Positions 1 to 61,857 of a stretch of DNA of 64,000 nt are shown one piece after another. The notes beneath the pieces are model-generated. The model had not been told where the DNA came from. It worked only from the letters and a program-made list of their open reading frames with translations, and ran no database searches. The stretch is from the NCBI RefSeq assembly GCF_963676685.1, contig NC_092352.1, positions 76,012,001 through 76,076,000 on the forward strand. Reading direction: 5' to 3'. The translations under genes and the position numbers were made by a program. This DNA is from Mytilus edulis (Eukaryota). Positions within the stretch are counted from its first letter, which is position 1. Every line of letters starts with the position of its first letter.

Positions 1-348
1 TATTAAAAAGTTTTGACGAAAATCATAGTTTAGTGGTTACAATAAATGAAATATGTTACGCGGGACAACCTAAAAATTGCCGGTTTTTTTTTAAATGAAG
101 CTTGTCGCATGCAGCATAAAACATAGTTTCAACAATTATTTTTTTCGTTTTCATTTTAAAAATCGTTATTTTTTAAAATACGTACAATAGCAATGAATAT
201 GATATCACAAAATTACATATTTTGGACTTGCATCTTGCCAACTACACCGAATTTCCAATGAGGTACGAACATCGCGCGTAACGTCAATTATTAATATGTA
301 CTATGCCATCGGTACACTTAATTTTGAACAAATAAGATAGTTAGTATT

Positions 349-630
349 AACCCCGCCGCATTTTTGCGCCTGTCCCAAGTCAGGAGCCTCTGGCCTTTGT
401 TAGTCTTGTATTATTTTAATTTTAGTTTCTTGTGTACAATTTGGAAATTAGTATGGCGTTCATTATCACTGGACTAGTATATATTTGTTTAGGGGCCAGC
501 TGAAGGACGCCTCCGGGTGCGGGAATTTCTCGCTACATTGAAGACCTGTTGGTGACCCTCTGCTGTTGTTTTTTATTTGGGCGGGTTGTTGTCTCTTTGA
601 CACATTCCCCATTTCCATTCTCAATTTTAT
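349..630 (+). mobile_element. Dispersed repeat family A starting with the 3' half of a twister ribozyme
   Basis: TT/AA-CCCC-GC-CGCAttttTGCG-CCTG-TCCCAAGT-CAGG at 347-384. Ends ...ctcaattttat. Partial copies with the same end at 5323-5561 (+), 26961-27090 (-) and 49843-49915 (-). Confidence 0.75.
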
Positions 631-1863
631 GCTAGAGTTATCTCTCTTTCTTCCTGGTTGTATCCAGGTGGTGTCCTACACGTTAAAATTGTACAGTAGC
701 TTCATTCATCAAATTCTCCGTTATAGCTCCATTAATTTAATATAATAGTAGAATTTACATTTCTATTTTCTAATTTCAGAAATTAAGATGAGGAGTATAC
801 GGCAATGAGACAGCAACCAGCATCACACATAGCCAAAAGACGTCAGAGGTCAACATGCAGTCTTTAACATAAGATATATTTGTATTACAGCAATCAAGTT
901 TTTAATCGCCAGTATTCAATAAGTTATGAATGAATTAATTATATCTTTCATTTAGGACTAGTATCTATTAAATTAACAAGTTCTAAATCGCCCGTGTTTT
1001 AAAAAGTTGTGAATAAATTATGCTGTGAAGGAATAGTTATCGTGCATAGAGATTTGATTTATAAGACATTTCCACGAGAAACCTTCAATCATTGATAGAT
1101 TAAAGCCGACAAATTCTGAAGTTTTAAAAGGTTTCTGATATTTCAGATTAAAACAGATAATATTTGTTCTCTTGCAAAATGCATATTTTTGGAACAGTTT
1201 TGAAATACAAAAGATTTTTTTATGATTTAAATCATCAATTTGATCCATCACACAATAAAACTAACCACTAAGATTCATAACAAGCCATAATATACTAAAT
1301 TATTCTCGTCTTACGAAATTTTGATTGAAAACGGTTACCGGACTTTTATTGATCTGAGAAGTCAAATTCACAATTTTTTAATTATTTCTCTTTATTTATA
1401 TAATAACTAAAGGGTATTTATTTTTAACAAACCATTAACAATCAGTTGTCAATATATATTATATATTTATACGATAGGATTATATAGTGTGTACTAATTA
1501 TTACATATATATTCTCCGCAACAACGTTTAGAGGGATTGGGATGTGTGTCAATGCAAAATCACTGGAACCAAAGCTGAACACATAAACAACAAAAATAAT
1601 GATATTTAAATTTGATATAAATTTGTCACCATTGTATATGTTTGATATGATTTCATTATTTAAACACAAAACTACCTCTTTTCTAAACATTCTATCTTCG
1701 TAATTCATTCATTGCATAAATATCATAATTCCCGAATTCTCGTCAAGTCTCGGAGAACACAATCCTTATCACTGTTGATATTATATGTAATTTTAATCCA
1801 CCATGAATAACTCTCTGTCGTTTCCATCGTTCTTAAAATTAATAAAACTAATAAATCATTACA

Positions 1864-2453
1864 TTATACTGGTGTGGTACGTCTTAATATTTGATCAGGA
1901 GGAGGTGGAGGCATAGGTAAATGGTCATGGTGGTCACGTGGTAAATGGTCATGGTGGTCACGTGGTAAATGGTCGTGGTGGTCACGTGGTAAATGTGTGT
2001 CTACAGTTGTCGAAATAGTGTTTCTTGAACATTCTCTAGGAAATGTATAATTTGATAGCTCGTGTGACGTTGTATCTGATATAGGCGTGTACGTATAATA
2101 ACTTTCGGATCTACTCATTGACGCATCTCGCGAACGCTCGCGAGAATGTGATCTATCTCGATTTTGATTAGGTGCGCGTCTATGACGCCATCTATTTCCT
2201 TTATCATTGCATTCTACTTTCAACATCTGTTGCATTTTCTTTCGTTGTGAGTGTTTATATCTAGTTATATATAAATATACTGAAAATACACCTGCTAGTT
2301 CAGTCAAACCAAACGAACACACTGCCATCATGAATGATGATCCGTATTTATAGATAAACTTTTTATCTTCCATTGGGTTTTGAGGCCCTTTATTCCCTAC
2401 TTCTTCTGTTATACTGCCTATATAAAGAATAATTCCTACTAGTGTGCAGAGTC
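1864..2453 (-). CDS. CACNG: Last coding exon of a stargazin/TARP-like voltage-dependent calcium channel gamma subunit (TM3, TM4, cytoplasmic tail)
   Basis: Acceptor ttttcag|GA at 2454/2453 (phase 1). Translation GLCTLVGIILYIGSITEEV...YKYGSSF...FGLTELAGVFSVYLYI, then an RS-rich segment and C-terminal RRTTPV-stop (TAA 1864-1866), typical of TARPs. Exon length 590 = 2+196x3, in frame with the upstream exon. Family-level symbol only. Confidence 0.95.
1916..1995 (-). repeat. In-frame 24-bp coding tandem repeat, (HLPRDHHD)x3 + HLP
   Basis: ggtaaatggtc(a/g)tggtggtcacgt three times from 1916, inside the last exon. Confidence 0.95.
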
Positions 2454-2899
2454 CTGAAAAAAGAGTTAAATTTTGTTTATCAAAATAGCCCATACATACA
2501 GTGCTCACTCAAATTTGGTCGTCCTTCCTCTACAAATTGTCTTTGACTGAATAATCATTTAAGACCTTAAACTTATAGTATCCCAATACTCTAGTGAACT
2601 AATCTGAATACAATACATATATGTAGGTACATTTTATTCACCATATAGACTAAGGTTTTGAAATCGTCAAAGTGAACACAGGTAACAACAGATTCTGTTA
2701 AACATCGCATTTTTATTTCCAGTTCTTTTTATCAAGTTTGACGGTAGACAACCACGATTTATACGTTTATTACAATCAAACAAAGTCAGTATACGGATAT
2801 GTAGAGTGCACAATAAATTGTATACAACAACTGAGTCTTATGTGCCTTGTGTGAAAGTATTTCATTGTAGAGTCAAGTTCAGATCACTGTGATACATAT

Positions 2900-3250
2900 C
2901 ATGTGCCACTCTCAAATCAATACATATTCCACTTTCAACTTAAAACCATGAGCTACGCTCCATTTGATATCACGAGCCACCATCCACTCAAAAAATATAT
3001 ATGCAACTCTTCACTTCGAATCATGTACTACCCTCCACCTGATATCCAGCGCCCCCCCCCCCCCCCCCCCCATGTGCCACTCTTCACTCAATAGCTTGTA
3101 CCCTCATGCACTATATACATGTGCATTTCTTCACTTAATATCACATGCCACACTTCAATCAATATCTTATGCAACCCTTCACTCCTTAAATGCTCCACCT
3201 TCCACCCATATAATGTGCCATCCTCCACTCAATATATATTCAATCCTCCT
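2900..3250. repeat. Degenerate ~30-bp minisatellite with poly-C tract
   Basis: Recurring atatcatgtgccaccctccact-like units; C run at about 3052-3071. Confidence 0.55.
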
Positions 3251-4109
3251 TCAATATCGTACTTTAATGAAATAATAAAATCTTAAAGGCGTAAAACGAA
3301 CACCAAACCCAAACAAATTATTCTTTATTAAAATCGGTTAATTGTTCTATTGTCGCATTGATGTTTATCCATATTATTCCGTTCATTTCTACGTTTAAAG
3401 CTTTTTTCTTCTTGTATTTGTATTGTTTTGTTTTTATTTTTCATTTCGACCAGCGAATCCTTCAGTAATTCCGCTCAAACGCAATTACGTTTCTTTATGT
3501 GATAGAATGATTGTTTTTGTTATTTATCATTTATTGGTTTACTAGTTGCATTGTCAATGGATAAACAGCATTCACAGGCATGTCAGATTTCATCATTCTA
3601 AGAAACAATAGACTTAAAATGAGAATTGCTAAATAATGCTCATCCCATTTATGTAAAGATCGGTGGGATTGGTAACTGTTTTTAAAAAGGAAAAAGTAGA
3701 AACATTTATCATTGGAACACAAAAATAACCATTTCAGTATAGTCATACCCAACGACAGTGACAAATAATGATAACCTATTTCTCAACTAGCGATAATTTT
3801 AACTCGTCTTATTGCATTGGATTAATATCGATTTACTTATTTATCGTTACATACAGTAAATAACTTTAAATCTCTTAATTTCTGAATTGGAATTCTGAAC
3901 ATCAAGAGCTATATGGTCGAACTCTCTTGTATTATGTTCATGCCATCAGTCGTTCATAGTACAAAATGTGTGCCCGAAATACCAAATTTTGAGTCGAGTA
4001 CGAAAGTGGTACTTCAAATGTTTATGACCGCAATGCTAGAAGTTTACATGAATATCCGAAGTCAGGATTCTCGTCATCTAATTAACTTTAATAATCAGCC
4101 ATTTAGGAA

Positions 4110-4440
4110 AAAAGTAAAATCACAAAAATACTGAACTCCGTGGAAAATTCAAAACGGAAAGTCCCTAATTAAATGGCAAAATCAAAAAATAAAACATATC
4201 AAACGAATGGACAACAACTATCATATTCCTGACTTGTTACAGGCATTTTCTTATGTAGAAAATGGTACCGGTGGATTGAACCTGGTTTTATAGCGCTAAA
4301 CCGCTCACTTGTATGACAGTCGCATCACATTCCATTATATTGACAACGATGCGTGAATAAAACAGACTTGATACGTAAAATTGTCAAAATAGGGGAACAA
4401 CAGTCATCACCGTGTCACAATCTCAATCAGACAAAATAAA
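4110..4440 (-). mobile_element. Dispersed repeat family B copy (degenerate twister)
   Basis: Homologous to 6100-6486, 11200-11690, 14035-14530, 21430-21760, 42019-42320 and 47635-47900. Twister at 4217-4320 has GA>GC, an L4 change and a 6-nt insertion. Confidence 0.8.
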
Positions 4441-6099: not shown

Positions 6100-6486
6100 T
6101 AGTTTATATGTCTTTTTTTGCTTCTTTGTTACATGTGTGTATGTGTTAGTGGTTAGGATTATAGCACAATGTTGCCTGCTGTATATTTGACACTTTTACC
6201 TATTATGTCTATTTATTTTGTTTACGCATCGTTGTAAATATAATTGAATTTGATGCGACTGTCATTCAAGTGAGAGGTTTAGCTAGCTATAAAACCAGGT
6301 TCAATCCACCAGTTTCTACACAAGAAAATGATGCCTGTACCAAGTTAGGAATATGACAGCTGTTATCAATTCTTTTGCTGTGTTTGAGCTTTTGATTTTG
6401 CCATTTGTTAAGGGACTTTTTATTAGGAACTCCCCGTTTTTTGAATTTTTCCTCGGAGTTCAGTATTTTTTGTGATTTTACTTTTT
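6100..6486 (+). mobile_element. Dispersed repeat family B copy
   Basis: Same sequence as the other B copies; ends ...gtgattttacttttt. Confidence 0.8.
6258..6360 (+). ncRNA. Type P5 twister ribozyme (family B variant)
   Basis: P5 CTGTCAT/ATGACAG; GTGA-GA-GGT; L1 TCAA; TCC-AC; P3 hairpin; P4 CCTG/TAGG; L4 TACCAAGT (T1 ACC/GGT, T2 AC/GT). A 3-nt duplication lies before P4. Confidence 0.65.
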
Positions 6487-8827: not shown

Positions 8828-9310
8828 AAAGAAGAAGTGGTATGATTTCCAACTAGACAACTCTCAACAAGAGACCAAATAACGCAATGATTAATAACCT
8901 TAGATCTCCGTACGGCCTCCAACTATGAGCAAAGCCTATGCCTCCTAGTCAGCTATAAAAGGCTCCGAAATGACAATGTAAAACAATTCAAACGAGAAAA
9001 TTAACGTCAAATATTTATGTACAAAAAATAAAAACAAATATGTTACACATCAACTAACAACAACCACTGGTTTACAGGCTCCTGACTTGGGACCGACACA
9101 TACATATAGTATGTGGCGGGGTTAAACATGTTAGTGGAAACCCAACCCTCAGTAACCTGGGACAGTGGTGTATCAACACAATATAAGAACGAACTATACA
9201 AAAATATTGAAAAAGGCTTAACTCATCAGATGGACAGAAATAATAATACATCTAACAAAAACAGAGTTGATGTGTCCGGGTACTTGCATATCCCAACAAC
9301 AGAAAGACAC
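8828..9310 (-). mobile_element. Dispersed repeat family C' copy with degenerate twister (9063-9169)
   Basis: Minus strand ACCACTG..CAGG..GA-GGG...TTAA-CCCC-GC-CACATAC/GTATGTG-TCGG-TCCCAAGT-CAGG..CCTG..CAGTGGT; P2' and P4 damaged. Related copies at 19960-20102, 61628-61800 and 63060-63355. Confidence 0.7.
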
Positions 9311-11199: not shown

Positions 11200-11690
11200 C
11201 TATGTTGACTGCTGTAACCCTATTTTTGACATTTTAACCTATTGTGTCTGTTTGTTTTGTTCACGCATCGTTGTAACTTTAATGGAATTAGATGCGACTG
11301 TCATAAGTGAGAGGTTTAGCTAACTATACATTCACCGGGTTCAATCCACCATTTTCGACATAAGAAAATGCCTGTATCAAGTCAGGAATATGACAGTGGT
11401 TGTCCATTCGTTTGGTGTGTTTGAGTTTTTGATTTTGTCATTTGATTAGGGACTCTCTTTTTTTTTTACGCTTCAAAACCAGGTTTAATCCACCATTTTC
11501 TACATTTGAAAATGCCTGTACCAAGTCAGGAGTATGACAGTTCTTGTCCATTCGTTTTTGATGTGTTTTGTCATTTGATTTTGCCATGATAATATGGACT
11601 TTCCGATTGGATTTCCTCTGAGTTTAGTATTTTTGTGATTTTACTTTTGAATTTTCCTCGGAGCTCAGTATTTTTGTGATTTTACTTTTT
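11200..11690 (+). mobile_element. Family B, tandem partial multimer with twister at 11297-11397 and a 3'-half twister at 11476-11541
   Basis: Two successive aatccaccattttc...cctgta.caagtcagg.atatgacagt cores and a duplicated terminal gattttacttttt. Confidence 0.8.
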
Positions 11691-14034: not shown

Positions 14035-14530
14035 CCTATTTTTAACATTTGTACCTTTTATGTTTGTTAAATTCACACATTGTTGTCAATATAATAGAAT
14101 TGTGTGTGACTTGACATACAAGTAAGAGGTTTAGCCAGCTATATAACCAGATTTAAACCACTATTTTCTAAAGAAGAAAATGTATGAACCATCGAAGGGA
14201 AATGTTAGTTGATATATCCATTTGACGATGAAATCAGATGCGACTGTCATACAAGTGAGCGGTTTAGCTAGTTAAATGTATAAAACCAGTTTCAATCCAC
14301 CATTTTCTACATAAGAAAATGCCTGTATCAAGTCAGAAATATGACAGTTGTTATCCATTCGTTTGAGCTTTCGATTTTCTAATTTGATAAGGGACTTTCC
14401 GTTTAGAATTTTCCTCGGAGTTCCGTTTTTTTTGTGATTTTTTTTTATATGTTTTAGCGTCTAGGTTTGCTATTCGATAAGGAAACTACCTTTTTGAATT
14501 TTCCTTGGAGTTCGGTAATTTTTTTTATTT
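14035..14530 (+). mobile_element. Family B tandem/nested copies
   Basis: Two successive B segments. Twister at 14242-14348 has GA>GC and a P4 mismatch. Another degenerate piece at about 13720-13920. Confidence 0.7.
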
Positions 14531-15389
14531 CTTCCCTAGGTGAAGAAGAATTGTTTTTTACGTTCGATTTTTTTTTAAACTTACATTCTTAATGCATATT
14601 ATATTATTTTACTACATGCTTTACACTTAATGTGGTACATAATTGGTAAAACTTATATTATATTATAATCACTACATATCTTATATAAGGAATTGCATTA
14701 TGCACAGCAGATATGTCAAGGTATGCGCATACTTTATATTCTTTTCAAATAAGAAAACACTTTGCATGAGTGAGTTTTAATCATTTTAAGTACTATAGAC
14801 AAAGTTTCACATAACCTTTCATTGGTTATAAGAAAATGATCATCACTGGCAGTTAACCAATCAAAGTTCCAACCCTGTTTTTTCCTGTTGTTTACAAGCT
14901 TAATTAGTCATGTTACATCATGTTTTAAAACGTCTTTAGAGAAACACCACATAAAAACAATGGTGCTTTGAAATACTCAAGATTTATGTTTATGATTCAG
15001 AATTTACTGCAATGAAATATAGGATCAATTCCCTACAACTGTCAAATTTAATGAAAATATTTGTTCGATCCTATTTCGTATTTATCGTACTATTATTTGA
15101 TGGTATAACACTTTTATGAAAAAATGCAACATGTTTTACTGCTGCTATTAAATTTTTTACAAGCCCCCCCTTTACTTCACAAGAATTTAATTTGGCCGCT
15201 TTCTAAGTGGTTAAACTTGAAAGTAATTTCTTTATGAGATGAAACATGGTGATCGTATTTGGAAACGAGTAGGTAAACAAGTAAAAACTATGATGTTAAT
15301 TATAAGTATCTCATCATAAGAAACTTCAAGATTATAAAAAAAACGGTTTTTTTTCTAAAGTGAACATTGATTGGTTAAATATTTCTCAG

Positions 15390-15937
15390 TCATGTCCTGT
15401 GTTTGAATTTGTTTGTTAGCTTTTTGGTCATGAATGTTTGTCTCTAATATTTAATTAACTGTGCATTTGTATTCAGATATCGCAGATCAAATTTATTCGT
15501 TCATTGTTTAATCATACGTTTTTTGATTGAGTTAAGTCTGCCAATTGATATTTTATCGTATGTTTTTCTTTGTTGTGATGTTATGCTATTGTTTCAGAAA
15601 AAGGGAGAAGGTTTGGATCCATTAAAACGTTTAATCCCGCTGCAAATGTTTGCACCTGTCCTAAGTCAGGAATCTGATGTACAGTAGTTGTCGTTTGTTT
15701 ATGTAATATATAAGTGTTTCTCGTTTCTCGTTTTGTTTATATAGATTAGACCGTTGGTTTTCCCGTTTGTATGGTTTTACACTAGTAATTTTGGGGCCCT
15801 TTATAGCTTGTTGTTCGGTGTGAGCCAAGGCTCTGTGTTGAAGGCCGTACTTTAACCTATAATGGTTTACTTTTTAAATTGTTATTTGTATGGAGAGTTG
15901 TCTCATTGGCACTCACACCACATCTTCTTATATCTAT
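15390..15937 (+). mobile_element. Dispersed repeat family C, longest copy
   Basis: Ends ...accacatcttcttatatctat. Partial copies at 27150-27385, 42590-42718, 46661-46816, 47908-48095 and 49408-49600. The 5' boundary is approximate. Confidence 0.8.
15586..15687 (+). ncRNA. Type P5 twister ribozyme, best-preserved copy
   Basis: P2 TCCC 15635-38/GGGA 15603-06; G15607-A15608; T1 CCT 15660-62/AGG 15609-11; scissile T15632/A15633-A15634; T2 GC 15639-40/GT 15665-66; P3 TGCAAA/TTTGCA; P4 CCTG/CAGG; P5 TCAGA/TCTGA plus CTATTGT/ACAGTAG. Confidence 0.78.
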
Positions 15938-27940: not shown

Positions 27941-28210
27941 AATAAAGGCAACAGTAGTATACCGCTGTTTTCGAAAGTCATAAATCAAGCGAGAGAAAAT
28001 AAATCCTGGTAACAAAGGAAAACCGAGAGAAACACGTCAATTATAAGAGGAAAACAAGGAAGCAACAGAAACACTTGAGTGCAACAAAAAACTAAATGAC
28101 AATGCAACACACAGAGAAACGAAGTATAAGATAACAACTGCCATTTTCCTGATTTGATACAGGACATTTTAAGGAAACATGGCGGGTTGAACCTGGCTTT
28201 GTGGCTGCTT
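27941..28210 (-). mobile_element. Dispersed repeat family D (degenerate twister core 28137-28200)
   Basis: Shared end aataaaggcaacagtagtataccgctgtt also at 35799, 38806 and 50384. Minus-strand core GGTTCAA-CCC-GC-P3-CCTG-TATCAAAT-CAGG. Confidence 0.7.
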
Positions 28211-31200
28211 AACATCGTAAAAAAGTTGCAATAATCCATGCATATTTATATAACCTTTGGTCATTATTTCTGACTCGCTCAATTCACACTTCAAGTCATG
28301 TTTCAAGCGAAGGTCAGTCGTTAACCCATATTCAAAGATATAGTTGCTAACTACATTTGAACCTTTATTCGATATTAGGATGACCTTATACAACATTGCT
28401 AAACTTTATTTTCTGTTGTTCTGTTATTTACAATTGGTTTTAGTGTGTGTATCTATATTTGAGTTATTTGAAAAAACAAATTACGAAACAATGTAATCTT
28501 ATCAAGTTACGTTTTAAGAATTTTACCAAACTAAAAATATAAAAAGGATCTTTTCTTTGATGTCGAAAGATCCCATTTGCTAAGAACTTATTTGATCAAT
28601 AATGTAAATGCAACAAACTTGTTTAAATTATTCTTTGAAATATTCCATGTTCCATTTTGTCAATTAATGGACCTTGTCATAACAATTAAATGCACACAAG
28701 TTTGAGCGGTTAGCAGTTAACTATATTTTTCGAAATTGAGTGCCATCGATCATGACAAAAAATGCTATTGCTCAGATAGAATACTACTGTACATGTTCGC
28801 ATGTACAGGCGGAAACCCGGTTGAAATAGAACAAACGAATCGAAGCTCTTTGTTAGAGAAGGCGATAAATGCTTACTGTAATGATTACTATAGCAACAAA
28901 AAAGTTAAAAGTTAATAGAAACAAATAAAATGACAATTTTCTTCTCAATTACGAAGTGTTCTATTTTAAAAATGCCATTTGCATAAGGTTTCAATTTATC
29001 TATTACATAGTTAAGCAGAACAATTAGATATCAAGTCGACGACATGGGTATCTATCAAGTTGGATGTAGAAAATGTATAACCTCCGATTTTGTTTTTAAA
29101 TACCACGGACGGAGAACACATCAATCTATAAGTTCAGTAATTGTCGTGTCTGCCCTTCTATTATGTGACTCAAGAAAAAAAATCTAAAAAATGGGTAACA
29201 ACTGTATCAAAAAGAGAAAATCGAGTGCATCTTTTTATGTTAGGGCGTGTTTGAGTTGAATATTTTGTCTTGAAAACGTACAAAGCAAGAATATTTGATA
29301 CATCATATCGCTTCAGATTCTTTCATTTTTATATATCAAAGCTACAGGTTGACTTTATAACCTAAATAATCACGGTACCAAAAGATGAAATATATGGGTC
29401 AAGTGAATTATCTATCTAATGAATCATAAAAACAGAGTAGGTGTGTTTATATAGCTATTTTTTTACAAAAAGTACTTGACGACAGTCTTTCAAGTTGGAT
29501 GATGAAAATGCATATCTTCGAAAATTAATATTTTTTTGTATGTGATAACTAAGGTTTATAGTCTTCAACCACTAAAAAAATCTAGTCTGCCCTTCCACGA
29601 AATATCTAATTAGAATTTTTTTTTAAATATTTATGAATTTTCAAAAAATCCACCTGACAACCGATTAGACAATGATTCTAAGTTGAATCAATGCAGACAA
29701 GATCATTAACTAATGCTCATTAGCTAGTAGATACATTTGTCTTTTAAAATACAACTGACATATAAGGATCGTAATGGTGCTATGCGGATAAATTTATCGG
29801 TTTCCAAGAGCAAAGTTGGCAGCGCGTCATCCCTACAATGGCTTCCATTTCTACGATTATGAAAATTATCTGGCGTAATGGGGAGACAATTTTGACGAAG
29901 AAGAATCCTGACTGTGTATGTCCATGATGTGTTTATGGCAGATCTTTGATAGTCTCCATTAAAATGCACAACTAGTTAACACTTGACTAATTTTAAAGCT
30001 TTGACATCTTGTATGCACACTTCTATATCATGTTAACATATGCTAAGCGCAAGATGGGGATTGTAAATGTTATTATAACGAACACACATGTTATATTCGT
30101 AAATTTTCGTGGAAGTAGTTTTTATTTGTTTTAAATCAAGCTTCATTTCAATAGTGTTTTGATATATATTCAAATTATTTCACAAGACAACACTCATCAT
30201 CAATTACCAACACAAAACTTTTACTTCAGTTACAAACTAGTAAACGGATAATATCTTCTAATTTATAGACATTGAAAACAAATAGGTTTTACGTTGTGTC
30301 CGGTATCAAGAGCATACTTAACCCGAATAAGTCATTCGTTATATTCCGCCGATCGTCGACTAATCTACGATTGCTACATTAACCCTCGATAGACAATAGG
30401 CCGCTAGAGCTAAGAGGGCGCACAATTATTCGAGTTAAGCAATCTTAAGACAATCATCAGATAGGATTACAAGGTATTGATAGGAAGAGCGAATGAACAA
30501 TTTCTACACGCTCAGTTGGAAATTGCATATGATAGCTCACAAGGTACTAGTTTCGAGAAAAATATGTCAATTTATGAAAGACTGTGAGCAGAGTAACGTT
30601 TGTTGGTATCATTTGAACATACAGTCCTTATGCAAAAAAGCAGAAAATTTCAAGCTGGTCTGTGACTAATTGAAGGAGCTCACGACTCCATAAAAATGTT
30701 ATTTTAATTGCCATGCATTATTGATAACTAGTTTCGATCTACTGTGGTTTACAGTTCAGATTTATTTGCCGTTAGCTGAGTGACAATGGAACTATTTACA
30801 ATTCCGCCTACAATAAACGCTCAGTGAATAATAAATATCCAGTATGGATTTCAAAAGTTGACGCAGTACTCCATCTTGAAACCTCCACTGTAATACTGAA
30901 TGTTGAATATACACGATGTAATCTTGTTCCAACTAAAGCCATGAACAAATTATCGCAAATACGTTCTTTAATTTCCTATACCATCAAACATGTTAAATAA
31001 TTCGAATAAATCTATAAGGTATTATGAACGAGAACAAGAACGCATTCTTACTGATAAATGTGTATAAACATATCTCTTAGCTATAGAGAACTCAATTTGT
31101 CCAAGAGGTTTCTCTCACTCATTTGGCAATTGTTATCCGAGTTTTAAAATCTAAATTTTTCTTATAATTTAAAAGGGACCGAAAAGTGTCACGTGACAAA

Positions 31201-40297: not shown

Positions 40298-40788
40298 AAA
40301 TAAACTCATCATAGATACCAGGACTTTATTTTGTATATACGCCAGACGCGCGTTTTGTCTACAAAAGACTCATCAGTGACGCTCGAATCCAAAAAAGTTA
40401 AAAAAAAAAAAAAAAAAAGGCCAAATAAAGTACGAAGTTGAAGAGCATTAAGAACCAAAATTCATAAAAGGTATGCCAAATACAGCTAAGGTACTCTATG
40501 CCTAAGGTGGAAAAGCCATAGTTTTCAAAAATTCAAAATTTTCTAAATTTATTAATATAACCATATCAATGATTATTCATGTCAGAACAAAAAGTAAGGA
40601 CTACTGGGCTGGTAATACCCTCAGGGAAATAAATCTCCACCAGCAGTGGCATCGACCCAGTGGTTGTAAATAAACTCATCATAGATACCAGGACTAAATT
40701 TTGTATATACGCCAGACGCGCGTTTCGTCTACAAAAGACTCATCAGTGACGCTCGAATCCAAAAAAGTTTAAAAGGCCAAATAAAGTA
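40298..40788 (-). mobile_element. Hammerhead retrozyme, 1.3 tandem units (370-bp period)
   Basis: Hammerheads at 40339-40382 and 40709-40752. Reverse complement of the 42.9-44.1 kb array. Confidence 0.9.
40709..40752 (-). ncRNA. Type I hammerhead ribozyme, intact
   Basis: gcgtca-CTGATGA-GTCTtttgtAGAC-GAAA-CGCGCGTC-tggcgt. Confidence 0.88.
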
Positions 40789-42018
40789 AATGGGTAATGT
40801 ACATTCGTAGAAGAATATTGTATCTAACAGTATTCATTTTGCAGACTTGAAAAAAGAATGTGGAATTGCCGTACAGGACAACTTTTTATGTATTCAACGC
40901 GAAACTTGATATTATAACACTCTGAGTTTTGACCCTGATACATCTAACGTCATTTGTCTAAAATCTTTAACTGAAGTCGCCTGACAATTCAACGTTCACC
41001 AGAGTACGCCTTTGATATAGATTAAATTAAATTGTATTTACTGAAGACCACCCTAGGAACAGAAAAGCACGCACCACTTCAGCAGCCGATAAACAATATG
41101 GCTTGATGTTCCTTTATGTAATCAAACTATTACCCTCCAAAAGGTCAACAGCTACTGCTGATGTAATATTATGTCTGTTTAAAATTCTTGATGAAAAATA
41201 TACAGTTATAAGGCGTTAAAAAATAGTGGACAGGCATATGTAAATGAATTATCATTTATTTACCTTTTTATTTCGGTATATGATGTGTGCATATGGAATT
41301 TAAAACTAAATGATCAAATAAACATTACAAGAATATAGATATTTTTTATTAAGTAGAGTATGTCCAACACAATAGAAAAAGCTTGCAATTCTTTTTATCA
41401 AATTTGAAAGATTTGTTGGACTCCGAAAAATAGAAATACATTGACGATTGGTTATGTCTATTGATTCCGTTGTCTTTTAATTGATGAAGTAAATTTATCA
41501 ACCTTTAAATATAGTAAGTGGACAAAACTGGTAGAATCGTATTACTTAACTACTTCAAAACCAATTTACATGCATGCGTTTACCGATTAAAAAACCAAAC
41601 CATTTCCTACTTCAAACAGATACCAAAGTGTTAAACCTGACAAACGTGTATGCATTTAGATCCTTCAAAACCAATCAGATTGTACTCTATTGAAAAGTAG
41701 TTCAGAAAATTAATTTGTCTGAAATCTACGGCATAAGAAAAGGTATGGTACGGCCATTACAATTCTGTACTAATCATATTATGTCACCCAAGCGGAAGAT
41801 GAAAATTTGTTATAGTCTAGTTGATCGTTGATTGCTGTACGCCCTCGCTGAAGTGTTTGTCATGTTCAATAAACTATAATCATAATTCAACTTCTGTCGA
41901 AGGAAGAGTCATCAAACGTTGACAAAGTGTCAAAACTGTAGGTGAAATTTTATTACGATTGTCATAAATCAGACGATGCTTTACTACCGTTAATCGTTAG
42001 TGTTTTGTTGTTGTAGTA

Positions 42019-42320
42019 AAAAGTAAAATCACAAAAATACTGAACTTAGAGGAAGATCAATTGGGAAAGTCCATAATCACATGGCAAAATCAAATAACAA
42101 AACGCATCAAAAACGAATGGACAAAAACTGTCATATTCCTGACTTGGTACAGGCATTTTCAAATGTAGAAAATGGTGGATTAAACCTGGTTCTATAGCGC
42201 TAACCCTCTCACTTTAATGACAGTCTCATCAATTTCCGATATTTTTACATGGATGCGTTAAATAAACAGACACAATAAATATAATAGTCAAAATATGGGT
42301 ACATCAGTCATCATCGTTTA
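42019..42320 (-). mobile_element. Family B copy with near-intact twister (42127-42224)
   Basis: P5 ACTGTCAT/ATGACAGT, P3 CATTTTC/GAAAATG, P4 CCTG/CAGG. T1 partner reads GGG instead of GGT (one mismatch). Confidence 0.8.
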
Positions 42321-42990
42321 ACAATTTTATTAATTTATAGTAATAGATTTAGATAAATAACTGATATTCAAATCTCATAAACTAAATCAAAAGATACAAA
42401 TCAAGGTTTATTTTTTTTAAATGAGGTCATCACATGAAAATGAGGCTATCACATGAAAACGAGGTTAAAATTCGGCGGAACCGGGCACGTCGGTAGATGA
42501 GCTAAAACAAAATAGTTGTTGAAATGTTCGTTGATTTTATATAAAACCAGTGTACAGAAAAAGACGTCATCATGGATAACAATACACGTAAGAAGATGTG
42601 GTATGAGTGCCAATGAGACAACTCTCTCATTCAAGTCACAATTGGTAAATGTAAACCATTACAGGTCAAAGTACGGTCATCAACACAGAGCCTTGGTTCG
42701 CACCGAACAGCAAGCTATTAATTTTTATTTGTTCCAATACCAAGTCTTTGATATAATTAAATATGACAAACGTATGTGTTATTATGGTTTAAACTGCATG
42801 CTGAACTATACAAAAATGAAAACAGAAACATCTTGATGTTTGGATCTTGAGTAAAGGGTTTTTATCTTTTCTTTATGATTTGTTCCCCTCTTGCTCTTTC
42901 TCATCAGTGTATTAAACACGTCTTCCTCATAAAAACAAATTCTCTTCAACTTCGAACTTTATTTGGCCTTTTTAACTTTTTTGGATTCGA

Positions 42991-43034
42991 GCGTCACTGA
43001 TGAGTCTTTTGTAGACGAAACGTGCGTCTGGCGT
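42991..43034 (+). ncRNA. Type I hammerhead ribozyme
   Basis: gcgtca-CTGATGA-GTCT/AGAC-GAAA-CGTGCGTC-tggcgt; GUC cleavage after 43028. Confidence 0.85.
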
Positions 43035-43663
43035 ATATACTAAATTTAGTGCTGGTATCTATGATGAGTTTATCTACAACCACTGGGTCGATGCCACTGC
43101 TGTTGGAGATATTTATTTCCCCGAGGGTATCACAAGCCCAGTAGTCAGCACTTTTTGTGCTGACATGAATTGTCATTGATATGGTTATAAATATAAATTT
43201 ACTGTTTACAAATTTTTTAATTTATTGAAATACTAAGGCTTTTCTACCTCAGGCATAGATAACCTTAGCTGCATTTGGCAAAACTTTTAGGAATTTTGGT
43301 CCTCAATGCTCTTCAACTTCGAACTTTATTTGGCCTTTTTAACTTTTTTGGATTTAAGCGTCACTGATGAGTCTTTTGTAGACGAAACGCACGTCTAACG
43401 TATATACTAAATTTAGTCCTGGTATCTATGATGAGTTTATTTACAACCATTGGGTCGATGCCACTGCTGGTGGAGATTTATTTCCCCGAGGATATCACAA
43501 GCCCAGTAGTCAGCACTTTTTGTGTTGACATGAATTGTCATTGATATGGTTATATTTATAAATTTACTGTTTACAAATTTTTGAATTTATTGAAATACTA
43601 AGGCTTTTTTTACCTCAGGCATAGATAACCTTAGCTGTATTTGGCAAAACGTTTTGGATTCGA

Positions 43664-43707
43664 GCGTCACTGATGAGTCTTATGTAGACGAAACGCGCGT
43701 CTGGCGT
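43664..43707 (+). ncRNA. Type I hammerhead ribozyme, intact with palindromic stem III
   Basis: gcgtca-CTGATGA-GTCTtatgtAGAC-GAAA-CGCGCGTC-tggcgt; cleavage after 43701. Confidence 0.9.
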
Positions 43708-46700
43708 ATATACTAAATTTAGTCCTGGTATCTATGATGAGTTTATTTACAACCACTGGGTCGATGCCACTGCTGGTGGAGATTTATTTCCCCGAGGGTA
43801 TCACAAGCCCAGTAGTCAGCACTTTGTGTGCTGACAGGAGTTGTCATTGATATGGTTATATTTATAAATTTACTGTTTACAAATTTTTGAATTTATTGAA
43901 ATACTTAGGCTTTTCTACCTCAGGCATAGATAACCTTAGCTGTATTTGGCAAAACTTTTAGGAATTTTGGTCCTCAATGCTCTTCAACTTCGAACTTTAT
44001 TTGGCCTTTTTAACTTTTTTGGATTCGAGCGTCACTGATGAGCCTTTTGTAGACGAAATGCGCGTCTGGCGTATATACTAAATTTAGTCCTGGTATCTAT
44101 GATGAGTTTATATACATATTTCTTTTAAACCTGCATCAAAAGAGCATTTACAATTTTTTTTTTATTCTTGAAAAAGTCGATCATTTACATATACATTTCA
44201 TTACAAAAGTCTTGTCCTTCCCAGAAGAATATCACTTTTCCTAAATGCCTTCATTTTGATATAAGAAACACAAACACCTATCTCTATTATTCCATTATTC
44301 TTCTTTACTGTACATATACCATTGAATACTTCTTGCCTTACAAAACAAATAATCTTTGAATTTCTGTAGCAAAAACCAATGACAAAAAAAAAACCATTTT
44401 CCTTCAGTAAATGTTAGAAATTCTAAGAAAAACGTTCTCAAAAAGAAAACGGCCTATAGTATGCAATGATTTCATTTATAATCAAAGAGCATTTCAACTA
44501 AATCACAGCACGGCAGTAATCCTCTGGGTGATTAAAACAAAGTCATCTTAAAGTTTAAAAAAGAGCTCATATTTTGCAGCAATGAAGCCATATTACGTGA
44601 AACTTGACATGGAACGAATAGGATTTGTGCGGATAACAAGAATCACTGCAGTTTTCATCATTAACTACGGGAAAAAAATACCCATTAATGATAACATAAC
44701 GACATAGTCACAAACAAGCTCATTTGTCATTGGACAATCGATAATCTCAAGGTCAAAGAGAACAAAACTTTCGTAGAAAAAATTAAGCAACATTGTCTAT
44801 TCAGTTAATGACCCAATACTGTAATGATCAATTAAATTAAAGGGAATAAACGTCCCTCTAGTCGATTATTTGAAATAGCCATGTCAAATGGAATATCATC
44901 GCAGACCTAGTAGTTGTATCTGCATCACGTGGTAAGAATTCTCTGCTGATTGTTAATCGTGTGGGTGCATGAGGAAAGCACATTAATTTCTTTCTTTCAA
45001 GAAAATGTTGTATTGTTTTTCATCGAAAAATAAATAGATTGATTCTTCATTTCATGGAATAAAAGAAAAGAATATAACATGTATACTTTCACCTCAAACA
45101 ATAAAATAGTCGGTTCAAGTGCTTATGTCTGACAAATCAAAAACGCAGTAGAATACACAGTGCAAATGTTATTACTTTCGAAGCACTTTTGTCAATAGAT
45201 AAACTATTACCAGGAATGTTAAATATCAAAACTGAAACAAGCCTTGGAAAGATCACTTAAAGCGCTTACTAAACGAAAAAATTTTGACAAGACCAATAAT
45301 ATAATATGATAATCACAACGTTTCCACTACACAGATAAAGTGAATTTCAGAAAACTATAGATTGTATTACCTCTTAAGTACCATTAAATATTGTGGATTT
45401 TAATATAAAAAAAAATATTTCAGCTACTCACTTGATGGAGTAAAGTAATCCGTCATTTTTCGGGGATTGATAATGATTGCATCAATGTTTTTATACTTTA
45501 AGGGTTTGTTAAGCTGGGTATTACTGCTAAGTAACACATTATTATACTTTTTTCATGAAACAGCTACACCATTAGAATGGAAACTCCCTTTTTTGGTCGG
45601 ACTGCGTTAAACGCGCGATAAACCTAGTACGATGATTTTGCTCGGACGGAGTGAAATGGATGCCACGTTTATGTTATTGGCTACTCCCAAAACTGCACTG
45701 ACAGGTTTCAACCATGTTGAAGTTTCAACATACTATTATGGAAGGTTTAAGATTTTTTTATCTATTTTTCTAGACCAGGTAACAGACGAATTGTTTTTTT
45801 TTTTAGCAAAATATTCTTACGAAGATTACAGTTTTGTGACCGTTTTTTTTTACCAAGATCCCTGAAAACTCACACATACATTAAAGTTGTTCAATTTTCT
45901 GACCTAGGAAATCAAGTGATTCTTCAACACAATTTGCATGAAATAATACCAAAATATTTTCTTTGAGAACAATTTACTGAGGTTGGGGGTATGATTTGAT
46001 ATTCATTTATTGTATTCATTTTTCCTGCAATTCATCTAAGTTTGGTTTAAATGGGACAAATGTCAATCTGTACTGATAAATTGTCTTCTATTGCTCAAAA
46101 CTATTTTGCTTTGATGTAATATGTATCCACATTTGTAAAAACGGTTAGCAATTTGCTGAATTTTAAATATCAATTCACTTAACTATCTATTTTGAAATTT
46201 TTGTAAACTTAAAGATATATACAAATGTACTTTAGGGCGTATCTAACTTACATATAACCATTTTTCTACAGAAGAACTATCACACACGTGGTATTACTCG
46301 TAAAATAGTTCAGTTGCCTTAGTTGATCAGTAAATGTTTACCCTTCCAAAGTATGTAAGTTCATCCCATTTGGGATATGGTCGTTGTTCTGATTTGTGAA
46401 TTGATGTTTGTTGCTGCAGCAACTTCTTTGCGTCTTAAGGCTTTTCCGTCTTAATTGACGTGCAGTTTTTTAAAATGCCCTCGTGTCTTCACACTTTTAA
46501 AGGATTAAAACCCTCACTGTTGAATAGATATAAACTGAATCAAGACTAAATTCATTGCTTACAATTCATTTTGAGATTTAGTTTGCTCTTAATAAAATAG
46601 CTTTTGTACTAGTGAACTCATGCCTCTTGTTGACCAGTCTACGATAATCAAAACATATTCAATAGATATAGGAAGATGTGGTATGAGTGCCAATGAGACA

Positions 46701-47599: not shown

Positions 47600-48095
47600 T
47601 GTGCAAACAAATGCAGCTGGTTTGAACAATATTCAAAAGCACAAACACATCAAGCGAATGGATAACAACTGTCATATTCCTGACTTGGTACAGGCATTTT
47701 CTTGGATTAAACCTGGTTTTATATCTAGCCAAACCTCTAACTTGTATGACAGTCGTATCAAATTCCTTGATATTGACAACGATGTGTAAACAAAACAAAC
47801 ATCATAATAGGTGAAAATGTTAAAATAGGGGTACAACAGTCAACACTGAGTTACATTCTTAATCACTATAAAAAAAAAAAAAATGTGCAACAAAGAAGCC
47901 TTGATTGACACCGAACAGCAAGTTATAAAGGGCTCCATAATGACTAGTGAAAAACAATTCAAAAAGGAAAATCAACGGTATAATCTATATAAAAAAAACG
48001 AGAAACGAGAAACATTTATGAACCACATCAACAAATGACAACCACTGAACAATATGTTCCTGCAAACAAATGCAGCTAGTTTAAACCATTTAAAT
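47600..48095 (-). mobile_element. Cluster of family B and family C fragments
   Basis: B at 47635-47900 (twister with P3 partly deleted) abutting C at 47908-48095. Confidence 0.7.
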
Positions 48096-53826: not shown

Positions 53827-54803
53827 AGAGAACAACGTATTCATAAAATCTGAAGCATATAATCTAATAGAGTTAAATGGCTTTCATGTTCGATTCTAAG
53901 GAATCAAAGGTAGTCTAAACGAATCCTTTTTAGGTGGAACCTGTGTGAACATCTCAACTAAGCATTTGACTTTAGTTCCGTTATAATGTCTTGGCTCTGT
54001 GTTTTAGCATTTATTTTCATTTAAAAAACATTGATTTCATAAAAGTTAAGTACTTTGAAAGTGAATCCTGTTGATAATGTTTAGTTCATTACATCGCGCA
54101 ACTACTGTCATACAATTAAGAAGTTTAGCTAGCTATAAAACAAGGTTTAATCCACATTTTTTCTACATAAGAAAATGTCTGTGCTAAGTCGGGAATATTG
54201 CAGTTGTTATCCATTCGTTTGATGTGTTGCAGCTTTTGATCTTGCTATTTGGTTGGGGCTTTCCTTTTCGGGTTTTCCTCGGAGTTCAGTATTTTCTGAT
54301 TATACTTCTTAATTCGTTTGTTGCATCATAAATTCCTTTGTTAAATTGTGTCTGTCAACTTTAATGTTTCATTTTTCCAGAATGATTTGCTGTATCTGTT
54401 ATTACAAATCATTATAAATATCAACTCTAATGTTTCATTTTCCCTGAAAGATTTGCTGTATCTGTATTTACAAATCTTTGAAAACATGATTGATTTAAAA
54501 CCCTAATGCCTTGATATTGAAGAGGCTCGTCATTATGGTCATTTACTTATGGTCAAAGTAAATATTTTGTCAAAATATTATGAAAATTAAACGAGATACA
54601 ATATTATTAGTCAAGGTGTTTGGTACCACATTAATTCTTTTGTTGCATCATAAATCCCTTCGTTAAACTGTGTATGTCAACTCTAATGATTCATTCTTCC
54701 CGAAAGATTCGCTGTATCTGTTCTACAAAATTTTACAAATCTTTTAAAACATGATCGGTTTTAAAACCCCAATGCCTTTATATTGAAGAGGCTCGTCATC
54801 ATG

Positions 54804-61630: not shown

Positions 61631-61857
61631 AGAAGATGTGATGTGATTGCAAATGAGTCAACACTTCACTAGAGACCAAATGACATAGAACGGCCCAGAA
61701 ATGACAAATGTAAAACTATTCAATTGAATTACATGCTCCTGACTTGGGACAGGCACATGCACAAAGACTATGGCCGGATAAAACATGCAAGCGGGATCCA
61801 AAACCTCCAATAGAATTTGTTTTCAAGCGATACACTAAAATCAGGTTAAGCATTATA

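Follow-up and report, generated by a model that had tools for sequence, protein, structure and literature searches.

A predicted type-P5 twister ribozyme in the tail of a Naiad-like Penelope-like retroelement of Mytilus edulis

What is encoded by a 102-base stretch that stands, with changed helices, at the core of several abundant repeat families of Mytilus edulis? The stretch occupies positions 15586-15687 of a window of 64,000 nucleotides (assembly GCF_963676685.1, contig NC_092352.1, 76,012,001 to 76,076,000, forward strand), and an initial annotation had read it as a type P5 twister ribozyme. Positions given below are those of the window unless a locus or contig is named; repeat families are lettered, and the focal copy belongs to family A. 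The sequence reads exactly as the initial annotation gave it. Its best explanation, in which we have good confidence, is that it encodes a twister-class self-cleaving ribozyme of the type-P5 circular permutation, located in the tail of a Naiad-type Penelope-like element (PLE). Judged by its sequence, the motif is a real twister-class motif.

The full type-P5 order, P5'-P2'-GA-T1'-spacer-U/AA-P2-T2-P3-P4/L4-P5 (the slash after U marks the predicted cut), was read across the focal stretch. Both ends of the motif lie inside P5, which is the circular permutation that marks this type. The parts are as follows, with MFE denoting the minimum free energy fold.

15586-15598, plus strand: 5' strand of P5, CUAUUG-UU-UCAGA, with its partner at 15673-15687; present in the MFE fold.
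15603-15606, plus strand: 3' strand of P2 (P2'), GGGA, with its partner UCCC at 15635-15638; covaries.
15607-15608, plus strand: conserved G15607, the candidate general base, and A15608; in family C these align with the GA of the Rfam Twister-P5 consensus.
15609-15611, plus strand: 3' strand of T1 (T1'), AGG, the pseudoknot partner of CCU in L4.
15614-15621, plus strand: Pal1, an 8-nt perfect palindrome UGGAUCCA, at the place where P1 should begin.
15625-15632, plus strand: Pal2, the palindrome AAACGUUU, whose last base is directly 5' of the predicted scissile bond.
15632-15634, plus strand: predicted scissile site between U15632 and A15633, followed by A15634; aligns with the UAA of Rfam twister-P1 and, in family C, with the UAA of Twister-P5.
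15635-15638, plus strand: 5' strand of P2, UCCC, which pairs with GGGA at 15603-15606.
15639-15640, plus strand: 5' strand of T2, GC, which pairs with GU of L4.
15641-15654, plus strand: P3 hairpin, UGCAA/UUGCA; present in the MFE fold.
15655-15670, plus strand: P4, CCUG/CAGG, with the 8-nt loop L4 U-CCU-AA-GU, which has the pattern N-NNN-AA-G-N.
15673-15687, plus strand: 3' strand of P5, UCUGA-UGUA-CAGUAG; present in the MFE fold.

In the focal copy, AAAA separates the 5' strand of P5 from P2', AA separates P4 from the 3' strand of P5, and a 21-nt spacer ending in U15632 runs from T1' to the cut site. The closing helix P5 measures 6-13 bp and differs in sequence in every family, with its pairing kept. 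GA stands directly 3' of the 3' strand of P2 in all 12 representative copies, and AA follows the scissile step in 12 of 12, where the preceding base (N-1) is U, C or A. Across these copies the two adenines after the cut (A1 and A2), the GA and the U..AAG of L4 are unchanged. The MFE folds of the focal stretch, family C and family B1 contain P5, P3 and P4 in the pairing listed above (z-scores -2.2 to -2.6); of these three folds, only that of the focal copy includes P2 in the listed pairing.

Family C (L038:1472-1538) matches the entire Rfam Twister-P5 model (RF02684), positions 1-58, and its parts fall in the register predicted for them; the score is 23.1 bits and the E-value in that search 0.0046. 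Family C is the family whose T1 and P2 are closest to the Twister-P5 consensus. The only match of the focal copy is a half-match to twister-P1 (14.4 bits, 15628-15690), which covers UAA-P2-GC-P3-P4/L4 and is also found in L069. The proposed type-P5 identity is supported in that all sequence-level hallmarks were found, the model fits family C end-to-end, and the helices and pseudoknots covary.

Within this genome, P2 occurs as UCCC/GGGA in family A, as CCCC/GGGG in family C and, with a bulge, as UCC/G(N)GA in family B. It forms a perfect 4-bp helix with five different sequences in families A and C and in L067, L122 and L136. T1 occurs as CCU/AGG, CCC/GGG and ACC/GGU, with GCU/AGU in one copy, and T2 as GC.GU or AC-GU; P3 and P5 have wholly different sequences between families and are always paired. 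The initial annotation had already listed the first three T1 states, both T2 states and the family-specific P3 and P5, and the covariation that it described is real. In alignment A1, T1 was 93.9% paired, two of its three pairs showed double-sided changes, and the covariation score was 0.257 versus 0.177 in shuffles, 0 of 500 of which reached that score. Alignment A4, with 35 distinct rows, had 80.9% of cells paired versus 74.9% in shuffles (0/500) and 28 double-sided cells versus 13.4 (0/500). Slid-register controls on A4 gave 33-49% paired.

Foreign contigs were fetched by the reverse transcriptase (RT) protein alone from bacterial 'genomes' and marine metagenomes. A strict descriptor, in which AA, GA, AAG and every pair of P2, T1, T2 and P4 were required, gave 15 matches over 313 kb of these contigs, all of them downstream of the RT and on its strand. 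No match was obtained on the opposite strand or in the reversed sequence of the same 313 kb. The foreign copies brought new states of P2 (CCAC/GUGG, GCCC/GGGC, ACAC/GUGU), of T1 (UCC/GGA, GCC/GGU) and of T2 (UC.GG, CC-GG). Their P4 reads ACCG/CGGU, GCCG/CGGC, GCAG/CUGC or GCUG/CAGC, and it covaries at pairs 1-3. Five pair-state combinations were thereby seen overall for the T1 pseudoknot, namely CCU/AGG, CCC/GGG, ACC/GGU, UCC/GGA and GCC/GGU. Moreover, a model trained only on this genome finds the foreign copies, with 59.8 bits (E 2e-10) for L072, 32 bits for L086 and 24.8 bits for L070.

The helices P2 and P4 and the pseudoknots T1 and T2 covary much more strongly in these related elements of other organisms than within this genome. 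The comparison shows P2, P3, P4, P5 and both pseudoknots as maintained by compensatory changes, both in this genome and in related elements from other hosts. It provides strong comparative proof of the twister fold, with the two pseudoknots included, and the covariation across families and foreign contigs is decisive evidence for a twister as far as sequence comparison goes. By the same reading, the motif is also present in related elements of other marine invertebrates.

The records concerned (L067-L087) are filed as bacterial genomes or metagenome-assembled genomes and carry contigs with invertebrate Naiad-type retroelements. Among them are a Paenibacillus tengchongensis contig, 'Bacterium D16-36', and SUP05, Thiodubiliella and Thiodiazotropha symbiont bins; relatives of the host element are also present in Bathymodiolus symbiont bins. 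Naiad-type contigs in bacterial records are evidently host or laboratory contamination.

Which element carries the focal ribozyme? The carrier is the following feature.

15321-15937, plus strand: 5'-truncated copy of family A, a Naiad-like PLE, with the 3' end ...CTATATCTAT; carries the focal ribozyme.

At least 39 other copies with 98-99% identity to this copy align from query position 22 to about 638. Family A copies are 97-99% identical and have a sharp common 3' end and variable 5' truncation. The full-length element measures 3.47 kb (L031:6368-9839), and some 250 nt separate the focal ribozyme from the 3' end of family A. The long frame of family A contains the motifs GPKY, ADKA, LPKLHK, GIPMDTNCAP and YLDD. 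In L031 the PLE-type RT has DKA in place of DKG (FVPADKAANNVVVV) together with KKGPKYRPP, the GxKF/Y motif, and the same motifs are present in L067. According to PMC8557442, Naiads have DKA for DKG and the GxKY motif, measure 3.4-4.4 kb, are heavily truncated at the 5' end, dominate in bivalves, include lineages that encode selenoproteins, and lack hammerheads. The length of family A and its frequent 5' truncation fit the Naiad range, and no hammerhead was matched by Rfam models in the element tails. The initial annotation had taken the families to be non-autonomous elements. Not all of them are: families B, C and E are short or 5'-truncated repeats, but family A forms the 3' end of this 3.47 kb Naiad-like PLE, which encodes an RT, and is therefore not a short non-autonomous repeat.

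The family A frame (L031:6602-8812) is interrupted by two in-frame TGA codons before its final TAA, and a SECIS_1 match (L031:8947-9004, 26.8 bits) lies 135 nt past the stop. Relatives have SECIS_1 matches at L068:2335-2397 (42.8 bits), L070:1060-1123 (39.3 bits) and L069:1271-1334 (29.2 bits); those in L068 and L070 are above the Rfam threshold and lie between the RT and the ribozyme. The internal stops of the long frames are all TGA, two in L031 and five in L067. The TGA-only interruptions and the SECIS matches fit the selenoprotein-encoding Naiads described for clams and spiders.

L067, which was found by its RT alone, has a frame of 1,074 codons (1186-4410) with the five internal TGAs. An N-terminal GIY-YIG endonuclease preceded by a Cys motif is a further mark of Naiads. 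By eye, L067 contains a CX4CxxC motif, a GIY-YIG-like core, a KR-rich block, DKA and the RT. Its N-terminus reads CNARRCLTC ... LIYVIT(stop)..YVGET, also by eye, with a TGA at a Cys position of the GIY-YIG-like core, and Pfam gave no match in pieces of it. In the N-terminus of family A from this genome, a GIY-YIG domain is unrecognisable. Pfam searches with the RT and presumed endonuclease pieces gave only a weak RVT_1 match (E 0.035-0.042). L067 carries two ribozyme copies 3,838 bp apart in an arrangement like that of a pseudo-long terminal repeat (pLTR); no such tandem was seen at L031.

Families B, C and E carry the same ribozyme core as family A. The family B element is 313 bp long (B1 element at 42017-42329), and at least 39 further copies share 98-100% identity with it. 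Copies of family C are up to 100% identical over the last ~285 bp, and their 5' truncation is variable, so that family C probably forms the tail of a different long element. Family E, a further large family of 4,786 copies, comes in addition to those listed in the initial annotation. In its commonest subfamily P2' reads GUGC, which leaves a C.C mismatch at the P2 pair adjoining the active site; sister subfamilies with GCGG, GAGG or GGG as P2' have P2 fully paired.

The motif is very abundant. The L4 motif CCTGTNNNAAGTCAGG, with at most one mismatch, has 12 matches in the window, with 0.05 expected, and none of 100 shuffles reached this number. A pattern running from GA-T1' through UAA to L4 gave 14,668 + 15,568 = 30,236 matches in the 1.37 Gb genome (backwards control, 0/1). 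The number of intact-looking core copies genome-wide would accordingly be put, on pattern matching, at the order of 30,000.

Would the RNA cleave itself? Self-cleavage by the motif is probable. The cut in the transcript would fall between U15632 and A15633 and would produce ends with a 2',3'-cyclic phosphate and a 5'-OH. The role may be the one proposed for pLTR and retrozyme hammerheads, in which read-through or tandem transcripts would be trimmed to unit length, and circularisation of the trimmed RNA could possibly be allowed. In assays of about 2,600 natural twisters, imperfections in P1, P2 and P4 and G.U pairs in the pseudoknots were tolerated, and changes at A1, A2 and (partly) the general-base G were not (PMC11662667). 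The intact copies in M. edulis follow exactly those tolerance rules.

Genomic 5' ends of family C were used as a proxy for cleavage. The window copy at 347-634 and a second copy begin two nucleotides 5' of the predicted cut; in a random retrieval of 29 family C copies, the 5' half was present in every one. Counted by hand, true junctions number about 38 among the 89 genome-wide pattern matches at the cut site and about 20 among the first 100 of 338 matches in a control window placed 10 nt further upstream; indel variants contaminate both counts. This proxy neither supports nor refutes cleavage.

Several observations weigh against a working type-P5 ribozyme. In the window no match to any Rfam model attains the gathering score, and neither does any copy of the motif; for Twister-P5 this score is 37.6 bits. 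The Twister-P5 match that was to be expected from the initial annotation was obtained along the whole model in family C, below the gathering score, and not at all in the focal copy. The score is lowered because of the unpaired 21-nt P1 region and the insertion of P3. Genome-wide, RF02684 gave nothing at E<=10, a result that says little because only 79 candidates were scored. A canonical P1 is absent. Abundant subfamilies have core defects, with an A.G mismatch in T1 in B1 and C.C at the first P2 pair in E1, and families B and E need a one-nucleotide bulge in P2', the identity of which varies (U, C or A). Genomic 5' ends of family C show no excess at the predicted cut over the control window. 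Finally, a cut in the 3' tail separates the open reading frame from the 3' end, so its benefit to an autonomous element is not obvious.

The lack of P1 deserves closer attention. No family has a P1 helix in cis. Instead, every lineage has two self-complementary blocks (~20 nt) between T1' and the cut, in place of P1. The initial annotation had called P1 weak; no cis P1 was found and its loss appears tolerable (PMC11662667), and the region is made of these two palindromic blocks rather than a weakened hairpin. The first block, Pal1, is a perfect, lineage-specific palindrome of 6-10 nt, and at least 12 different ones occur at the same place. Its forms are UGGAUCCA, UGGUACCA, UGGGCCCA, UGAGAUCUCA, GGGAUCCC, UAGCGCUA, UAGCUAGCUA and UGGCAUGCCA, and further GGGCCC, GGCGCC, GUGCGCAC, ACGCGCGU and GCAGCUGC. 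Pal2 ends at or beside N-1 and reads AAACGUUU, AAACAUGUUU, AACCGGUU or AAACUAGUUU, or in other lineages is odd-centred, for example AACC-A-GGUU. Shuffling gave p-values of 0.002-0.058 per sequence, which combine by Fisher's method to about 6e-8 in our own arithmetic, the lineages not being fully independent.

A palindrome of six nucleotides is unable to fold into a hairpin, and Pal1 changes symmetrically from lineage to lineage, so the simplest reading is that two molecules or two neighbouring copies pair with each other. With two self-complementary blocks in place of the P1 hairpin, the ribozyme may be active as a dimer of two RNAs or of two neighbouring copies, as described for PLE hammerheads whose stem-III loops are palindromic. 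Dimer action is thus suggested by the sequence of the P1 region. RNAcofold predicted domain-swapped dimers through Pal1, with a gain no better than that of shuffles for seven of eight sequences, so the dimer idea draws its support from the palindromes themselves. Alternatively, the palindromes may be sites acting at the DNA level or binding a protein, with the RNA working as a monomer that has no P1. This alternative, which touches the dimer part only, could equally well be right or wrong in our judgement. Both the RNAcofold result and the dispensability of P1 in tested twisters, for which PMC11662667 cites earlier work, speak for it; the inability of palindromes such as GGGCCC or GGCGCC to form hairpins speaks against it, as do the dozen or more perfect palindromes at one place with symmetric changes between them.

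A second alternative concerns catalysis. The twister fold or its descent could be kept for a non-catalytic job, for example as a structured 3'-tail module recognised by the RT of the element. The motif stands in the 3' tail common to the long element and the short repeats, and recognition by the RT would also explain its presence in short non-autonomous repeats. The lack of any excess of genomic 5' ends at the cut site points the same way, as do the core mismatches in the very young and very abundant subfamilies B1 and E1. The invariant nucleotides, however, are the catalytic or active-site ones (A1, A2, the G and A after P2', and AAG of L4), exactly those that a protein-binding scaffold would be unlikely to keep, and both pseudoknots are maintained by compensatory change. 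We regard this alternative as unlikely and retain a self-cleaving twister as the preferred reading.

Least tenable is that a conserved transposon core resembles a twister by chance, such as a tRNA-derived short interspersed nuclear element (SINE) with a B-box-like GGTTCAATCC overlapping 'UAA-P2': the sequence spanning the cleavage site in families B2 and E is indeed GGTTCAATCC / GGTTCAACCC, a common sequence downstream of P5 marks the families as homologous, and all Rfam scores are below threshold, but the B-box reading is absent from families A, C and C' and from foreign lineages, the helices change in sequence with pairing kept, contigs found through protein alone carry the motif with zero control matches, and chance cannot explain coordinated changes in four helices, so that covariation and foreign contigs have largely refuted a reading we consider highly improbable. 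ARAGORN finds no tRNA-like gene in the window, and the tRNA-derived SINE version was rejected.

How does this twister compare with known systems? Like type-P5 twisters (RF02684; PMC6765202, PMC8501958, PMC11662667), it has the order P2'-GA-T1'-[P1 region]-UAA-P2-GC-(P3)-P4/L4 closed by P5, with the same conserved nucleotides and both pseudoknots. It differs from them in scores below gathering, in palindromic blocks for the P1 hairpin, in a P3 that is always present, and in its host, an animal retroelement at ~30,000 copies. L4 ends here in U or G, where the consensus has C, and T2 consequently contains a G.U, A-U or C-G pair. The twister variants of Schistosoma Perere-3/RTE (PMC8501958; PMC7761336) likewise place the twister class in a high-copy retroelement. 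Those twisters are 5'-terminal, the target-site duplication completes their P1, and their cleavage sets the 5' end of the element (PMC8501958), whereas the motif described here stands ~110-300 nt from the 3' end, is P5-permuted, and shows no pile-up of 5' ends at the cut.

Similarity to the hammerheads of canonical PLE pLTRs and retrozymes (PMC6765202, PMC7229834, PMC8557442) lies in the PLE host, the 3' or pLTR position and carriage by short non-autonomous repeats. PLE hammerheads also have a weak closing helix with a palindrome, there taken as the basis of cleavage as a dimer (PMC6765202). The ribozyme class is different, and Naiad-type PLEs are reported without canonical hammerheads (PMC8557442). 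Retrozyme-type hammerhead arrays do occur in the window (40339-44072), separately from the twister copies.

The initial annotation knew of no description in bivalves. Twisters have in fact been predicted there (PMC11662667), which leaves the permutation, the host element and the copy number as the new part. Together with the palindromic replacement of P1, these are new. No paper linking twisters to PLEs or Naiads was found, although a description in other journals is possible, and the Naiad paper (PMC8557442) does not mention twisters.

Naiads lack the hammerhead carried by all other endonuclease-containing PLEs, yet they have proliferated massively in bivalves (PMC8557442). A twister in the place of the hammerhead would answer this puzzle, and self-cleavage itself, not a specific motif, would be what PLEs need. 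It is tempting, if doubtful, to go further and propose that Naiads of several hosts carry a P5-permuted twister where other PLEs carry a hammerhead, and that it has given up P1 for two palindromes and so cleaves only as a domain-swapped dimer. One ribozyme class would then have been replaced by another in the same retroelement niche, and this would be the first dimerisation-dependent twister. The palindromic replacement of P1 parallels the dimer-dependent hammerheads of PLEs and gives a clean prediction. To our knowledge, eukaryotic twisters have almost no assigned function; here the class is tied to a defined retroelement clade, in tens of thousands of copies and with conservation across hosts. 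Both the annotation of 'unknown' high-copy repeats and the Rfam twister models could be improved with these copies.

A covariance model built from copies of this genome detected 17 window copies (E<0.01), of which 16 were aligned. In an automatic tally, every core feature was kept in 4 of the 16 rows (15588-15681, 42127-42224, 6258-6360 and 11297-11397), and 54104-54204 was added by manual reading as a fifth copy with all core features; the other aligned copies are mutated or 5'-truncated. The claim of more than 10 ribozyme-containing copies in 64 kb is thus borne out by the number of model matches and reduced to four, plus one by hand, when all core features are demanded. Besides the focal copy, the following were described.

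42127-42224, minus strand: family B1 copy with all core features, inside the 313-bp element 42017-42329.
6258-6360, plus strand: family B2 copy, core intact (genome-trained model and feature tally).
11297-11397, plus strand: family B2 copy, core intact (genome-trained model and feature tally).
54104-54204, plus strand: B2 variant with T1 GCU/AGU, a compensatory change within one copy.
347-634, plus strand: family C copy without its 5' half; family homology begins 2 nt 5' of the predicted cut.
9064-9168, minus strand: family C' copy with decayed P2' (feature tally).
4217-4320, minus strand: B2 copy with GA mutated to GC (feature tally).
14243-14348, plus strand: B2 copy with GA mutated to GC (feature tally).
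47668-47753, minus strand: B2 copy with P3 deleted (feature tally).
28137-28232, minus strand: E-like copy, 5' half unrecognisable (feature tally).
61727-61816, minus strand: decayed copy, formerly 'family D', with AA and GA absent.

Five families had been said to share the layout. It was confirmed for A, B and C; the C' copy of the window (9064-9168) has lost P2' to decay, and 'D' is a decayed copy with neither AA nor GA.

Directly after the B2 copy 11297-11397 lies a 5'-truncated copy (11452-11541) that begins ~12 nt 5' of the cleavage site. The two form a partial tandem of the kind described for PLEs.

Some variants of family C have lost only the second palindrome (~10 nt), with ...GAUCUCA(C) joined straight to AACCCC, for example at genome places C10:84740913, C2339:9665, C11:55181059 and C12:65692810. 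Six junctions were also found in which the 3' end of family A (...ATATCTAT or ...ATATCTA) is followed, after 0-1 extra base, by family C from its predicted A1 (AACCCC...). Their places are, for example, C3:9582317, C8:18278974, C9:2551946, C11:21816018, C715:8950 and C1159:13419. These junctions could be due to template switching from cleaved family C RNA or to repeated insertion at one site.

Six near-threshold matches to Hammerhead_1 (type I; 21.5-33 bits, gathering score 34) lie on both strands of 40339-44072. They stand in tandem repeats ~330-370 bp apart, with the B1 twister element 42017-42329 between them, and these repeats look like the mussel hammerhead retrozymes of PMC7229834.

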